From contig JANJGN010000012.1 of NCBI GenBank assembly GCA_026770705.1, positions 45,880,001 through 45,944,000 of the forward strand: 64,000 nucleotides of DNA, in the 5' to 3' direction. This stretch comes from Isurus oxyrinchus. Its lineage: Eukaryota. Below are positions 3,601 to 59,181 of this stretch, piece after piece. The notes under the pieces were generated by a model. That model worked only from the letters and a program-made list of their open reading frames with translations. It searched no databases and was not told where the DNA came from. Each line of letters opens with the position of its first letter. Within the stretch, counting starts at the first letter, position 1. The translations under genes and the position numbers were made by a program.

Positions 3601-4011
3601 CTATATTACAGATATAATCTGTAATTGAAAGTGACGGACCTCAGAGTAACACACACTGTATTGAAGGAATGTGATCTGATATGCACTTCATGTAAAATCC
3701 AATTTGAACTATTATATAATGTACATTTACAAATTTTATGAATAAAATATATTTTTGAACAAAAATGGGGAAATAGGAAATATCAGAAGATAAACTATGT
3801 TCTGTTTAAAATGTAAGAGTTTCTAATAGGACTGAGGTATCTCTACATCAACCTGTGTTTCTAACATTCAGACATTCCAGTCTGAGAAGGAAGTGTCTGA
3901 TAGGTAATACTGCAGAGTTGTGAAAGCATTTATGGCAATTGGATAGGTATATCAGAATATTCAAATTAAATTGCTAGGGAAGAACATAACTGCATAGATT
4001 AAACTAGTAAA

Positions 4012-4032
4012 ATATATATATATATATATATA
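4012..4032. repeat. (TA)n microsatellite
   Basis: Direct reading: about 10 TA units at the junction between captured DNA and PLE sequence. Confidence 0.9.
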
Positions 4033-4381
4033 TGGCACCACCCCATGCCCACGCAAAAGATGTAACACCTGCCCCTTCACTTCCTCTCTCCTCACCGTCC
4101 AAGGGCCCAAACACTCCTTTCAAGTGAAGCAACATTTCACTTGCATTTCCCCCAACTTAGTCTACTGCATTCGTTGCTCCCAATGTGGTCTCCTCTACAT
4201 TGGAGAGACCAAACGTAAACTGGGCGAACGCTTTGCAGAACACCTGCGGTCTGTCCGCAAGAATGACCCAAACCTCCCTGTCGCTTGCCATTTTAACACT
4301 CCACCCTGCTCTCTTGCCCACGTCTGTCCTTGGCTTGCTGCATTGTTCCAGTGAAGCCCAACGCATACTGGAGGAACAACA

Positions 4382-4614
4382 GATATAAGAACGGGGAAGC
4401 TGCGGATGCTGGAGGTCCAAGGCAGGGGCAGGGTTGCCTGGAGGGGCTCGGCGGGTCTGGCAGCATCGGCGGAGAGGAGTTGGCGTTTCGGGTCCTCGTG
4501 GCCCTTTGACAGAAGTTCTGTTGGGGGGTCGTGGGGGCTTGAAGCGTCAACTCTTTTCTTCTCCGCCGATGCTGCCGGACCTGCTGGGTTTTTCCAGGCA
4601 ATTCTGTTTTTGTT
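4382..4614 (+). mobile_element. Nested fold-back (inverted) PLE pLTR insertion with A>G hypermutation
   Basis: 14-bp TSD CTGGAGGAACAACA at 4368-4381 and 4615-4628. Arms 4421-4514 and 4515-4614 are reverse and forward copies of 5088-5187. Confidence 0.88.
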
Positions 4615-5086
4615 CTGGAGGAACAACACCTCATCTTCCGACTAGGCACCTTACAGCCTTCCGGAGTGAATATTGAATTCAACAACTTTAGGTCGTGAGC
4701 TCTCTCCCCCATCCCCACCCCCTTTCTGTTTCCCCCTTCCTTTTTTTTCCAATAAATTATAAAGATTTTCCTTTTCCCACCTATTTCCATTATAAAAAAA
4801 ATAAATAAAAAAAAAACACACCCCCACTAGAGCTATACCTTGAGTGCCCTACCATCCATTCTTAATTAGCACATTCATTTAGATAATATCACCAACTTTA
4901 ACACTTATGTGTTCTATTGTACCATTGTCGTTGACATCTTTTGATGATCTGCTTCTATCACTGCTTGTTTGTCCATACAACCACACCCCCCTCCCCCCCA
5001 CCTCTCTCTCTCTCTATCTCTCCGCCCCCCACACACACACACCTTAAACCAGCTTATATTTCAACTCTTTCTTGGACTTGAACTCA

Positions 5087-5125
5087 AGTTCTGTCGAAGG
5101 GTCATGAGGACTCGAAACGTCAACT
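5087..5125 (+). ncRNA. Minimal (Penelope-type) hammerhead ribozyme motif, variant core
   Basis: AGTT-CTGTCGA-A-GGGTC-ATGAG-GACTC-GAAAC-GTC-AACT. Stem I is AGTT/AACT, stem II is GGGTC/GACTC, palindromic ACGT sits at stem III, and the cleavage triplet is GUC. The core has U in place of the canonical A6. Confidence 0.6.
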
Positions 5126-5232
5126 CTTTTCTTCTCCGCCGATGCTGCCAGACCTGCTGAGTTTTTCCAGGTAATTCTGTTTTTGTTCTGTGTTTCTAAC
5201 GCTGAATGGGAGGGTTTCAGATCCTTGCTCTG

Positions 5233-35332: not shown

Positions 35333-35477
35333 AAATAAAAGCAAAATACTGTGGATGCTGGAAATCTAATATAAAAACAGGAAATGCCGGAAAACTCAGC
35401 AGTTCTGGCAGCATCTGTGGAGCGGGAAACAGAGTTAACATTTCGAGTCCAAATTACACTTCTTTAGAGCTGAAGAG
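35333..35477 (-). mobile_element. Short PLE pLTR insertion
   Basis: pLTR sequence as in 38270-38403, reversed. 13-bp TSD AGCTA(T/C)AGTAACA at 35320-35332 and 35478-35490. Confidence 0.75.
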
Positions 35478-35694
35478 AGCTACAGTAACATGTGCTGTAT
35501 CAATGTGTGGTACAGAAATGTGTCACTGGAATCCAGTTTTATTAATGAGAAAACCACAAGATAAAATTATGTCCTTGTTTAAAGTTTCTTGCCCAATATA
35601 TCCCATGGGAGTTTTTATGTTTGCCTGCTTCTTCTATCCAGGGCTGGAGTTTAAATTGCAGGTCAATTAAAACAAGAACTCTGCTATACCACAT

Positions 35695-36330: not shown

Positions 36331-38403
36331 AATCCACAAACAGGACTGTCCTGGCAGACCAATTATGTCAGCCTGTTCCTGCCCCACAGAACTCATTTCT
36401 TGCTATCTTGACTCCATCCTCTCTCCCCTTGTCCAGTCTCTTCCCACCTATATCCGCGATTCCTCTGATGCCCTACATCATATCAACAATTTCCAGTTCC
36501 CTGGCCCCAACCGCCTCCTTTTCACCATGGACGTCCAATCCCTCTATACCTCGATCCCCAAATGGGATGGCGGGAGGGCACTCCACTTCTTCCTTGAAGA
36601 GGCCCAAACAATCCCCATCCACCACCACTCTCCTCCATCTGGCTGAACTTGTTCTCTCACTTAACAATTTCTCCGTAAACTTGTCTCTCTTTCTCCAAAT
36701 AAAAGGTGTGGCTATGGGTACCCGCATGGGCCCCTGTTATGCCTGTCTCTTTATGGATTATGTGGAACATTCCTTGTTCCAGTCCTACTCCAGCCCCCTC
36801 CCACAACTCTTTCTCCAGTACATTGATGATTGCTTCGGTGCCACTTCATGCTCTCGTCTGGACCTGGAAAATTTTATTAATTTTGCTTCCAATTTCCACC
36901 CCTCCATCACTTTCGCATGGTCCATCACTGACACTTCCCTTCCCTTCCTTGCCCTCTTTGTCTCAATTTCTGGTGATAGACTATTCACCAATATCCATTA
37001 CAAGCCCACCGACTCCCACAGCTACCTTGATTACAGCTCCTGCTTCCAGTAAGGACTCCATCCCTTTCTCTCAGTTCCTTCACCTCCGCCGCATCTGTTC
37101 TGATGATGCCAATTTCCAAAACAGTTCTTCTGACATGTCTTCCTTCTTCCTTAAACGAAGTTTTCCACCGATGGTGGTTGACAGGGCCCTCAACCACATC
37201 CAACCCATCGCCCACGCATCTGCCCTCATATCTTCCTCTCCCTCCCAGAACCATGATTGGGTCCCTCTTGTCCTCACTTATCACCCCATCAGCCTCCGTA
37301 TTCAAAGGATCATCCTCCACCATTTCCGCCAACTCCAGCATGATACCACCACATCTTCCCTTCACCCCTCTCTGTCAGCATTCTTTAGGGACCATTCCCT
37401 CCAGGACACCCTGGTCCACTCTTCCATCACCCCCTACACCTCAACCCCCTCCCACAGCACCTTCCCATGCAACTGCAAAAGGTGCAACCCCTGCCCCTTT
37501 ACTTGCCCCCTCCTCACCGTCCAAGGGCCCAAACGCTCCTTTCAAGTGAAGCAGCACTTCACTTGTACTCCCCTCAATTTAGTCTATGGCATTCACTGCT
37601 CCCAATGTGGTCTCCTCTACACTGGAAGACCAAACGCTGACTGGGTGGCTGCTTTGTGGAACAGCTTCGGTTTGTCCGCAAGCATGACCCATACCTCCCT
37701 GTTGCTGGCCATTTCAACACACGACCCTGCTCTCATGCCCACATGTCCGTCCTTGGCCTGCTGCAATGTTCCAGTGAAGCTCAATGCAAACTGAAGGAAC
37801 AGCACCTCATCTTCCAATTAGGCACTTTACAGCTTTCTGGACTTATCATTGAGTTCAACAACTTCAGATCATGAATTCTTTTCTGCATCCTCACCCCCTT
37901 TTGGATCCCCTTTTTTCTAATAATTATATATTTTTTATAAAAATAGTTTTCTTTTCCCACCTATTTTGATTATTATTTTTAAAATTTATTTCCATCCATT
38001 GTTTTATCTCCACCTTTTAGCCTATTTCAATCCCTTCCCCCCACTAGGACCATCTGTCACTTGCTCATCCTGCTTTCTACCCTTAATATCACCATTAGCA
38101 CATCCTTTAGCTAATATCATCACCATTAACACCCCTTTGACCTTTTTGTTTATGACATCTTTGGCAATCTCTCCTTTGCCTCCACCAATCACTGACCCTC
38201 CATCCAGATCCACCTGTTTCCCCTCCCCTTAAACAGCTTATATTTCACCACATTTCTATTTCTCTTTCGTTCTGATGAAGAGTCAAATGGACTTGAAATG
38301 TTAACTCTGTATTCCTTTCCACAGATGCTGTCAGACGTGCTGAATTTTTCCAGTTATTTTTGTTTTTGTTTCAGATTTCCAGCATCTGAAGTATTTTACT
38401 TTT
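36331..38403 (+). mobile_element. Penelope-like element (RT + GIY-YIG + pLTR) in the V2 leader intron
   Basis: KIHKQDCPGRPI, FTMDVQSLYTSIP, GVAMGTRMGPCYA, QYIDD. 12-bp TSD AACAATGTTTAA at 36319-36330 and 38404-38415. Hammerhead core CTGATGA at 38272-38278. Confidence 0.93.
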
Positions 38404-38432
38404 AACAATGTTTAATCCCTGCTCTGTTACAG

Positions 38433-56448: not shown

Positions 56449-59181
56449 AAAACAGAATTACCTGGAAAAACTCAGCAGGTCTGGCAGCATCGACGGAGAA
56501 AAAAAAAAGTTGACATTTTGAGTCCTCATACCCTTCAACAGAACTGAGTGAAATTAGGAGAGGGGTGAAATATAAACTGGTTTAAGGTTGTTGAGAGGGG
56601 GGGGGCGGGGTGCGGTGTGGTTGTAGGGACAAGCAAGCAATGATAGGAGCAGATAAACAAAAGATGTCACAGACAAAAGAACAAAGAGGTGTTGAAGGTG
56701 GTGATATTATCTAAACGAATGTGCTAATTAAGAATGGATGGCAGGACCCACAAGGTACAGCTCTAGTGGGGGTGGGGTGGAATAAGACTAACTGGGCATA
56801 AAAGGTATAGATTTAAAATAATGGAAATAGGTGGGAAAAGAAAAATCTGTATAAATTATTGGAAACAAAAGGGGGGGGGGAAGAAACAGATAGGGGGTGG
56901 GGATGGAGGAGGGAGTTCAAGATCTAAAGCTGATGAATTCAATATTCGGTCCAGAAGGCTGTAAAGTGCCTGGTCGGAAAAGAAGGTGCTGTTCCTCCTG
57001 TTTGCGTTGGGCTTCACTGGAACAATGCAACAAGCAAAGGACAGACATACGGGCAAGAGAGCAGGATGGAGTGTTAAAATGGCAAGTGACAATGAGGTTT
57101 GGGTCTTTCTTGCGGACAGATCGCAGGTGTTCTGCAAAGTGGTCACCCAGTTTGCATTTGGTCTCTCCAATGTAGAGGAGACTGCATTGGGAACAACAAA
57201 TGCAGTAGACTAAGTTGGGGGAAATGCAAGTGAAAGGCTGCTTCACTTGAAAGGAGCGTTTGGGCCCTTGGATGGTGAGGAGAGGAAAGGGCAGGTGTTG
57301 CATCTTTTGCATTTGCATGGGGAGATGCTGTAGGTGGGGGTTGAGAAGTAGGGGGTGATGGAGGTGTGGACCAAGGTGTCCTGGAGGGAACGAACCCTAC
57401 GGAATGCCACCGGTGGGGGGGCAGGGGGTGGTGTGAAGGGAAGATGTGTTTGGTGTTGGTATCATATTGGAGTTGGCGGAGGATGATCCTTTGAATATGG
57501 AGGCTGGTGGGATGGTAAGAACATGGGGGTCCCTCTCATGTTTCTGGGAGGGAGAACTCGTGAGGGCAGATGCACGGGAGATGGGCCTGACACGGTTGAG
57601 GGCCCTGTCAACAACCGTGGGTGGAAAACCTTGGTTGAGGAAGGAGGAGGACATGTCGGAGGAACTGTTTTTGAAGGCAGCATCATCAGAACAGACGACG
57701 GAGGCGAAGGAACTGAGAGAACGGGATGGAGTCCTTACAGGAAGCAGACTGTGAGCTGTAGTCAAGGTAGCTGTGGGAGTCAGTAGGTTTGTATTGGGAT
57801 ATTGGTGGACAGTCTATCACCAGAAATTAAGACAGAGAAGTCAAGGAAGGGAAGAGAAGTGTCAGAGATGGACCATGTGAAAATGATGGAGATTGGAAAC
57901 AAAATTAATAAATTTTTCCAGGTCCTGACAATAGCATGAAGCAGCGCCAAAGTAATCATCGAAGTACCGGAGAAAGAGTTGTGGGAGGGGGCTGGAGTAG
58001 GACTGGAACAAGGAATGTTCCACATATCCCATAAAGAGACAGGCATAGCTGGGGCCCATGCGGGTACCCATAGGCACACCTTTTATTTGGAGGAAATGAG
58101 AGGAGTTAAAGGAGAAATTGTTCAGTGTGAGAACAAGTTTAGCCAGACAGAGGATAGTGGTGGATGGGGATTGTTTGGGCCTCTGTTCGAGGAAGAAGCT
58201 AAGGGCCCTTGGACCATCCTGGGGAGGGGGGGGGGGGGGGGGGGGTGGTGGAGGTGTAGAGGGATTGGACGTCCAAGGTGAAGAGGAAGTGGTTGGGGCC
58301 AGGAAACTGGAAATTGTTGTTGTGACATAAGGTGTCAGAGGAATCATGGATGTAGTTGGGAAGGGACTGGACAAGGGGAGAGAGAAGGGAGTCAAGATAA
58401 CTAGAAATGAGTTCCGTGGGGCAGGAACAGGCTGACACGATTTGCCTGCCGGGACAGTCCTGTTTGTGGATTTTGGGTAGGAGGTAGAAGTGGGCCATCC
58501 AAGGTTGGGCGACTATCAGGTTGGAAGCTGTGGGAGGAAGATCTCCAGAGATGAGGTCAGCGACAGTCCTGGAAACGATGGCTTGATGTTTAGTGGTGGG
58601 ATCATGGTCCAGGGAGAGGTAGGAGGAAGCGTCTGCGAGTTGACACTCAGCCTCCGCAAGGTAGAGGTCAGTGTGCCAGACAGCGACAGCACCACCCTTG
58701 TCAGCGGGTTTGATGACAATATTGGGGTTGGACCTGAGAATGGAGTGCAGTAAGTTCAGAGAGAGACAGATTAGAATGGGTGAGAGGAGCAGAGAAAATG
58801 AGACGACTAATATCACACCAACAGTTCTCAATGAAAAGATCAAGAGAAGGTAAGAATCCAGAGGGTCCAGGTGGATGGAGAATACTGGAGGTGGGTAAAA
58901 GGATCCGTTGAACGGGGAGAGGACTCCTGCCCAAAGAAATGAGCCCGGAGATGAAGACAGCAGAAGATGAGTTCAGCATCGTTCCGAGCCCAAAATTCAT
59001 TGAGATGAGGGCGTAAGGGTATGAAACTAAGTCCTTTGCTGAGCACTGAACGTCCAGCATTGGAGTGGGGAAGGTCAGGGGGTATAGTGAATACACGGCC
59101 CGGGCTGGGATTGGAAGATGGGGTGGGGACGGAGGGACAGGCAGGGGTGGAAGGTCCTAGATGGGTGTTGGTGTCGATGAG
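56449..59181 (-). mobile_element. Penelope-like element (RT + GIY-YIG + pLTR), frameshifted
   Basis: IVIKPADKGGAV, LPKIHKQDCPGR, PMGTRMGPSYA, RYFDD, LLYIGETK. 13-bp TSD TCCTGTCCAGTTG at 56436-56448 and 59182-59194. Confidence 0.94.

Follow-up and report, generated by a model that had tools for sequence, protein, structure and literature searches.

A strand-coherent cluster of A>G changes in a palindromic Penelope-like insert of a shark genome, and its possible origin from an edited fold-back RNA

The DNA analysed here, called the window throughout, is a stretch of 64,000 nucleotides from Isurus oxyrinchus (assembly GCA_026770705.1, contig JANJGN010000012.1, positions 45,880,001 to 45,944,000, forward strand), and all coordinates given below are those of the window. 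Within a decayed Penelope-like element (PLE) lies a 233-bp insert (4382-4614) that itself consists of PLE sequence, and whose + strand carries G at 28 positions where the unedited sister sequence carries A. An earlier note on this DNA, made from the letters alone, had proposed that the insert is the genomic trace of a hairpin RNA hyper-edited by ADAR and then retrotransposed into the germline. The features of the locus, including the two copies of the target site duplication (TSD), are listed below.

4034-5187, + strand: host PLE copy, 5'-truncated and frameshifted, comprising the GIY-YIG end of the open reading frame and the 3' region and starting at a (TA)n microsatellite (Pfam, translation and depth).
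4368-4381, + strand: left TSD copy, CTGGAGGAACAACA, inside the host PLE reading frame.
4382-4420, - strand: PLE tail, antisense, 39 bp, unpaired within the insert (alignment to the tails at 38370-38404 and 35336-35373).
4421-4514, - strand: inverted (antisense) arm of the PLE 3' end, with 20 A>G (+ strand), one C>T at a CpG and a 5-nt deletion.
4502-4523, + strand: hairpin turn, with its axis at 4514-4516 (site list and predicted structure).
4515-4614, + strand: direct (sense) arm of the PLE 3' end, finishing at the usual ...GTT, with 8 A>G, two C>T at CpG and one T>C.
4615-4628, + strand: right TSD copy, CTGGAGGAACAACA, identical to the left copy at 14 of 14 positions.
5086-5187, + strand: 3' end of the host PLE copy, the unedited sister, used as reference.

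The insert is composed of a 39-bp tail, a 94-nt inverted arm and a 100-nt direct arm of the PLE 3' end, and the 14-bp TSD on either side is perfect, as had been claimed. Removal of the insert together with one TSD copy (4381 joined to 4629) restores the reading frame of the host, which then ends in ...SEAQRILEEQHLIFRLGTLQPSGVNIEFNNFRS and a stop. The direct arm corresponds to the last 100 nt of the element in the sense orientation and terminates at the family's usual ...CTGTTTTTGTT; the inverted arm is the same segment in antisense. The tail is the antisense of the 34-39 nt found downstream of ...CTGTTTTTGTT in some other copies (38370-38404 and 35336-35373). The 14-bp TSD, a right end located at the family's usual 3' end and a left end located at the end of the tail point to passage through RNA and reverse transcription. 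Assignment of both host and insert to PLEs rests on the GIY-YIG reading frame of the host and, in the insert, on a direct copy adjoined by a 5'-truncated copy in inverse orientation, with the tail at one end. The letters TGGA occupy positions 2-5 both of the right TSD copy and of the tail, so that priming by microhomology at the junction between the right TSD copy and the insert is possible.

Both arms were compared with the host element's own 3' end (5086-5187), the left arm with its reverse complement. The right arm (4513-4614 against 5086-5187) aligned without gaps and differed by 8 A>G, two C>T (both at CpG) and one T>C. The left arm (4421-4514), read on the + strand, differed by 20 A>G, one C>T at a CpG and one 5-nt deletion. 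These counts agree with those of the earlier note, which had given about 20 and about 8 A>G changes, all on the + strand, and only three C>T at CpG, one T>C and a deletion of about 5 nt besides. Over the 196 aligned nucleotides there were thus 28 A>G, one T>C, three C>T and no G>A, and every A>G was on the + strand. With 55 A and 55 T positions available, the imbalance of 28 A>G to one T>C has a Fisher p of 1.4e-9. The converted A residues make up 55% of those that could be scored (28/51). When A and G were counted as one letter the identity of the arms to the sister was 93% (left) and 97% (right), against 79% and 89% with four letters. The single T>C (GGTAA to GGCAA) falls at the same element position in both arms and is, because of this, probably a variant of the source copy, in which case 27 A>G and no T>C remain. 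An APOBEC-type signature of cDNA editing was not found in the arms: there is no G>A, and the only C>T changes are the three at CpG. These three (4503, 4522 and 4539) are all on the + strand, a coherence that involves too few sites for testing, and two of them affect the same element CpG, on opposite element strands, one in each arm.

The changes extend into the tail. Contigs that continue beyond 5187 in four sequencing runs start with TTGGATTTCCAGCATC, where the insert, read in sense, has TTGGACCTCCAGCATC; farther along, a run of T in the relatives is replaced by C in the insert (sense), which is A>G on the + strand. About five or six tail sites are changed in this way, a count that is uncertain because a tail of the same subfamily is absent from the window; the G enrichment of 4382-4420 that had been noticed earlier is borne out to that extent. 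Near the turn of the hairpin the pattern stops. All six A residues within 11 nt of the turn are unchanged (0.45^6 = 0.008). Changes are few in the GC-rich middle of the stem and dense in its A/U-rich outer and inner thirds.

A background was derived from 141 repeat pairs obtained by self-BLAST of the window, each scored by the share of a single substitution class. The median share was 0.15 and the 99th percentile 0.51; the two arms of the insert, at 0.73 and 0.86, ranked at the top of the 141 pairs. The host flank (4035-4381), compared with a relative at 56987-57328, was ordinary (11/32), in line with the earlier statement that the host element is free of the bias. Since the changes end at the TSDs and the flanks are ordinary, the A>G event is placed before or at integration. 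Mutation after integration, whether similar to somatic hypermutation, coupled to transcription or of another kind, was rejected on the same two observations.

The direction of the changes was read from five further copies of the 3' end in the window (56449, 38269, 31236, 35373 and 40035; identities from 91% to about 78%), compared by their states at each site and without building a consensus or repaired element. At the eight changed sites of the right arm these copies carry A in 35 of 40 cells, and at the 20 sites of the left arm the unedited base in 82 of 100. Because the other copies carry A or T at the changed sites, G is the derived state and A the ancestral one. The earlier note had named a genome consensus with G at these sites, and changes mirrored between the arms, as findings that would speak against its proposal. 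The copies in the window do not point to the former, and the changes are not mirrored, each changed site lying opposite an unedited partner. The reverse polarity, with G>A in all other copies, was excluded by the outgroup copies in the window. A three-letter search (A=G) of the window returned no hyper-edited arm besides those of the insert, and long queries from the host gave only noise.

RNA of + polarity from the insert is predicted to fold into a stem of 92 bp with a 3-nt loop (4514-4516), at -169.5 kcal/mol (z -17), in agreement with the description of the insert as an almost loop-less inverted repeat of the PLE end. The stem contains 43 G-C, 20 A-U and 29 G·U pairs, the G of the last lying on the left arm in 20 cases and on the right arm in nine. 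Every difference between the arms is therefore a G·U wobble, in the + strand RNA only. The - strand folds with only -91 kcal/mol, and the same sites become C·A mismatches. The changes had also been said to destroy a hammerhead core (CTGTCGA and GAAAC in the sister). The letters of the motif do change, but the claim is unsupported, as the unedited core already reads CUGUCGA...GAAAC where the canonical motif is CUGAUGA (the copy at 38269 has CTGATGA...GAAA), and Rfam, searched at the gathering score and at E<=10, gave no hammerhead anywhere in the window, the sister and the copy at 38269 included. The + strand hairpin 4427-4609 matches the plant MIR8670 model with 51 bits (E 1e-8; gathering score 150). 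This match was discarded as a generic long-hairpin artefact far below threshold, plant microRNA models being the only Rfam matches on the insert.

Contigs assembled from several sequencing runs were placed on the window. In the unique flank 3872-4002 the window is identical to run X1 (organism A), and runs from organism B, a related species, differ at 2 of 131 positions. In X1 the positions 4421-4422 have a depth of 37, all of it G, and the tail a depth of about 54; the unique flanks have depths of 35-80 and the PLE body of millions. The G-rich arm is present at single-copy depth in genomic contigs of the likely source species. Two variants were seen within X1: the changed site 4432 has A in contigs of depth 37 but G in contigs of depth 28, and a 1-nt deletion at 4399 has 17 of the depth of 54. 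Together they look like a pair of alleles within a single animal, of which one keeps the unedited base at one site of the insert. Contigs across 4421-4432 are missing from two DNA runs of organism B, a gap that proves nothing by itself; the insert may be absent from organism B. Joints that skip from 4365-4378 to 4615-4628 occur in the contigs and come from the countless paralogous copies of the host.

One further run, X16, a small one whose library type is guessed to be RNA, has 68-85 distinct contigs with at least 85% similarity to the G-rich antisense arm (4412-4513). Several of the contigs that resemble the left arm carry A at 4421, 4422 and 4432, and the unique flanks are uncovered. The ratio of left-arm to right-arm depth is about 10 in X16 and 0.007-0.05 in three DNA runs, a relative excess of more than 200-fold. 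This excess is suggestive of variably hyper-edited PLE hairpin RNA, and is taken only as that.

The arrangement of the insert must be kept apart from its substitutions. PLE insertions often consist of a 5'-truncated copy next to an inverted 5'-truncated copy, with a tail of 30-40 bp at one end only (PMC8557442). The PLE protein of the anole nicks and extends both target strands in vitro, and begins reverse transcription at two internal sites of its RNA, the tail being the stretch between them (PMC11167929). The order of tail, inverted arm and direct arm is that of a canonical PLE insertion product, and by itself is no evidence of a fold-back transcript. The likeness to such products (PMC8557442, PMC11167929) covers the truncated direct copy, the inverted copy, the tail at one end, the TSD and a target within another PLE or near a microsatellite. 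The difference is that ordinary products are not hypermutated, and that the strand pattern seen here is incompatible with two copies primed independently from sense RNA. A single nucleic acid of + polarity, containing the tail and both arms and changed before its complement was fixed, is needed. The argument for a single RNA template comes from the strand coherence of the changes and not from the layout. If twin priming had copied ADAR-edited sense RNAs on the two target strands, the + strand of the left arm would be first-strand cDNA and would show T>C; this was rejected, that arm having 20 A>G and no T>C. A single cDNA that snapped back on itself, with or without a preceding polymerase error, would carry each change in both arms; this was rejected as well, since the changed sites face an unedited partner.

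The explanation that we favour, with a probability of about 0.6, is that the A>G cluster derives from a fold-back PLE RNA that was hyper-edited by ADAR and reverse transcribed into the germline. In this scheme an RNA of + polarity, holding an antisense PLE 3' end (tail, then arm) followed by a sense one (arm, then tail), would fold into a stem of about 130 bp; its source would probably be one of the many inverted PLE arrangements of the genome. ADAR would turn about half of the A residues into inosine on both sides of the stem. The PLE reverse transcriptase, primed by the nicked target within another PLE copy, would start at its usual internal site (...GTT) and leave the 3' tail uncopied. It would read inosine as G and pass the turn as far as the end of the antisense tail. 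The cDNA would then integrate with a 14-bp target duplication and be transmitted through the germline. This course of events would also explain why the insert lacks the 3' tail yet has the 5' antisense tail in edited form. It has to be assumed that the RNA reached no farther than the base of the duplex, for instance because single-stranded flanks were trimmed or because its 5' end lay there.

Several observations agree with this scheme. [quoted passage not shown] Spared A residues at the turn are expected of an enzyme that requires flanking duplex, unlike polymerase error. An edited tail, unpaired within the insert, fits an RNA that ran past the internal start site of reverse transcription (PMC11167929), and the partner of the tail would then lie outside the insert. 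An ADAR-edited fold-back RNA followed by reverse transcription is also the only route built wholly from known activities.

Other observations weigh against it. The 5' G depletion expected of ADAR, which the earlier note had proposed as a check, is absent: a 5' G precedes 8 of the 28 changed and 8 of the 23 unchanged A residues (p=0.76), where 31% would be expected without any preference. In edited clusters of human and Xenopus a 5' G stands at 6-8% of the sites, and against the benchmark of 7.85% (PMC2873906) the 8/28 found here has a binomial p of 0.001. There is no 3' G enrichment either (8/28 edited against 7/23 unedited sites). The share of changed A by 5' neighbour falls from A (68%) through G (50%) to C (42%), without significance. 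The related claim that the first A after G or C is spared holds in three runs of A but not overall, as half of the A residues with a 5' G (8/16) are changed. In addition, the left end lies at the canonical tail end, that is, at a start site of reverse transcription, as it would after de novo priming of the top strand, and on account of this coincidence the fold-back scheme needs its extra assumption. Neither a source locus nor, in the search of the window, a second edited copy was found; the evidence from runs consists of assembled contigs; and the whole is one case with 51 informative sites.

Near saturation in a perfect duplex, selectivity for neighbours should be weaker, and 51 sites are few. 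The enzyme is therefore taken to be ADAR with moderate confidence; we infer it, as we do the RNA intermediate and the way in which the left end was set. Of the proposal as first made, the part that stands is one + strand template with about 55% A-to-G conversion; the enzyme is unproven, and the layout, which had been read as that of a fold-back transcript, does not speak for one by itself.

The best of the other explanations, to which we give a small chance, is that the PLE enzyme made the insert de novo, on both target strands or on one strand with a template jump, and that the top strand received G for A. A skewed deoxynucleotide pool, an aberrant enzyme or deamination of deoxyadenosine would be the cause, and replication without repair would fix the strand. 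The layout, with arms that end near the ribozyme, is a known PLE product, and the anole enzyme does extend both strands (PMC8557442, PMC11167929). The location of the left end at the tail end is what this explanation expects, and the missing ADAR neighbour bias and the edited unpaired tail both suit a process that is independent of duplex. Polymerase bias does not predict, however, that the six A residues of the turn, and most of those in the stem's GC-rich middle, should be left unchanged. We know of no polymerase or pool imbalance that replaces 55% of one base in vivo, and dGTP is normally not in excess over dATP. In vitro, the DNA strand of an RNA:DNA hybrid can itself be a substrate of ADAR (Zheng et al. 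2017, as cited in PMC12925331). In its simple form such editing was rejected, in connection with de novo synthesis and as a cause on its own, because it would give T>C on the + strand of the right arm, which is not seen.

A second possibility, and a slim one, is that an unedited palindromic PLE mini-element was inserted first, and that RNA-templated gene conversion of the locus followed later, with a hyper-edited and reverse-transcribed copy of its own transcript as donor. This would account for the canonical PLE ends, for a pattern confined to the + strand and for changes limited to the insert, and reverse transcriptase should be plentiful in a genome with so many PLE copies. The tail is changed too, yet nothing close to it at this locus is complementary to it, since the sister stops at 5187 and is tail-less. 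Conversion mediated by cDNA is very rare where it has been measured, and this course takes more steps than direct retrotransposition.

That there was no hypermutation at all, the G residues going back to descent from a G-rich subfamily, to G>A in the sisters or to gradual change after insertion, is very improbable. The family is enormous, with depths in the millions, so any single variant exists somewhere, and G at 4577 is indeed found in most contigs placed on the right arm. But the other copies in the window, down to about 78% identity, carry A or T at the sites, and the G-rich segment 4421-4432 is at single-copy depth in X1 and uncovered in the two runs of organism B. The flanks, which are of the same age, are unbiased, and gradual mutation is not expected to keep to one strand in both arms. 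An artefact of assembly or sequencing in a palindromic repeat can be dismissed as hardly credible: inverted PLE structures do trouble assemblies (PMC8557442), and X1, the best DNA match, may be the assembly's own sample, but the independent short-read contigs of X1 give G at 4421 and 4422 with no alternative and a tail depth of about 54, and sequencing errors would not yield 28 A>G without another class.

The host copy and its surroundings show the following. Its GIY-YIG endonuclease domain was recognised by Pfam (PF01541, 24.6 bits, cut-off 22.6). Two letters (AT) that part of the family has after 4321 are missing from it, and since this loss at 4321-4322 shifts the GIY-YIG frame, the copy is no longer functional. 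The 13-bp sequence CTGTGTTTCTAAC, repeated exactly and in direct orientation at 3853-3865 and 5188-5200, resembles a TSD around 3866-5187. PLE homology and high-copy depth begin only at about 4004-4034, beside the (TA)n microsatellite, with contig depth climbing from about 50 to more than 400,000 across 4004-4054, and 3866-4003 is single-copy. Either the 5' end of the inserted unit consisted of about 170 nt that are not PLE sequence, or the 13-bp repeat is unrelated. Elsewhere in the window two older PLE 3' ends, at 35336-35478 (-) and 38261-38404 (+), stand opposed about 2.8 kb apart, with tails of 34-37 nt each, and are a larger case of the inverted arrangement, which could yield a panhandle RNA. 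Further inverted PLE-end junctions, some with unequal arms, exist in the genome, since contigs of three DNA runs switch strand within the PLE 3' end at 5090/5152 and 5096/5135.

RNA editing is normally regarded as non-heritable. If the insert is a clean natural case, the germline of a vertebrate can take up edited RNA in the form of DNA, the PLE reverse transcriptase can traverse a long hairpin, and a single event can add about 15% divergence, which would distort age estimates and subfamily trees of transposons. It also supplies a search image for genome-wide scans, namely palindromic retro-inserts whose two arms carry A>G changes coherent in strand. A wider reading, doubtful at present, is that palindromic PLE mini-elements of this shark repeatedly give hairpin transcripts that are hyper-edited and occasionally copied back into the germline, as a recurrent heritable mutator. 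Were that so, perfect DNA palindromes would be broken into stable imperfect ones, the deaminase would have little neighbour preference, unlike mammalian and frog ADARs, and the excess in X16 of contigs resembling the G-rich arm would be the RNA side of the process. For the insert itself, the pattern is real and unusually clean and the mechanism plausible, at a single locus and with the enzyme unproven.

In a full-text search of the literature no transposon copy of a germline turned up that bears an ADAR-type signature; the precedents concern retroviruses of cells in culture. A part played by ADAR editing in how retrotransposons evolve has been assumed but 'has not yet been determined', in the words of a review (PMC4982230), and ADAR1 restricts L1 without editing it (PMC5224506).

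Fossils of APOBEC-type editing in genomic retroelements are known as G>A clusters in IAP, HERV and Alu (PMC2873906; Carmi et al. 2011, as cited in PMC4365171). They share with the insert a one-off burst of a single transition class in one retroelement copy that was then inherited. They differ in having G>A and not A>G, in arising on single-stranded cDNA where duplex RNA is proposed here, and in the enzyme family. ADAR commonly edits RNA in which transposon copies form inverted pairs (PMC4365171). The edited Alu pairs of human and the palindromic repeats of Xenopus (PMC4365171, PMC2873906) resemble the insert in the long near-perfect duplex formed by opposed copies and in the clustered A>G on one strand. 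There the changes are in RNA only and the DNA is unedited, whereas here they are in DNA; and the share of sites with a 5' G, 6-8% in those clusters, is 29% here.

The closest precedent is provided by avian retroviral proviruses, described in the 1990s, that show A>G hypermutation and arose from inverted repeats in RNA, as summarised in PMC12925331. The two cases are alike in the inverted repeat, in the conversion of nearly 50% of A to G, in the restriction of the changes to the RNA-sense strand and in their fixation as DNA by reverse transcription. The insert differs in its target-primed reverse transcription with a TSD, and in that an ADAR neighbour motif was tested for and not found. According to the same text the avian cases concern exogenous viruses or vectors in cultured somatic cells; the insert is an endogenous PLE in the germline assembly of a shark.
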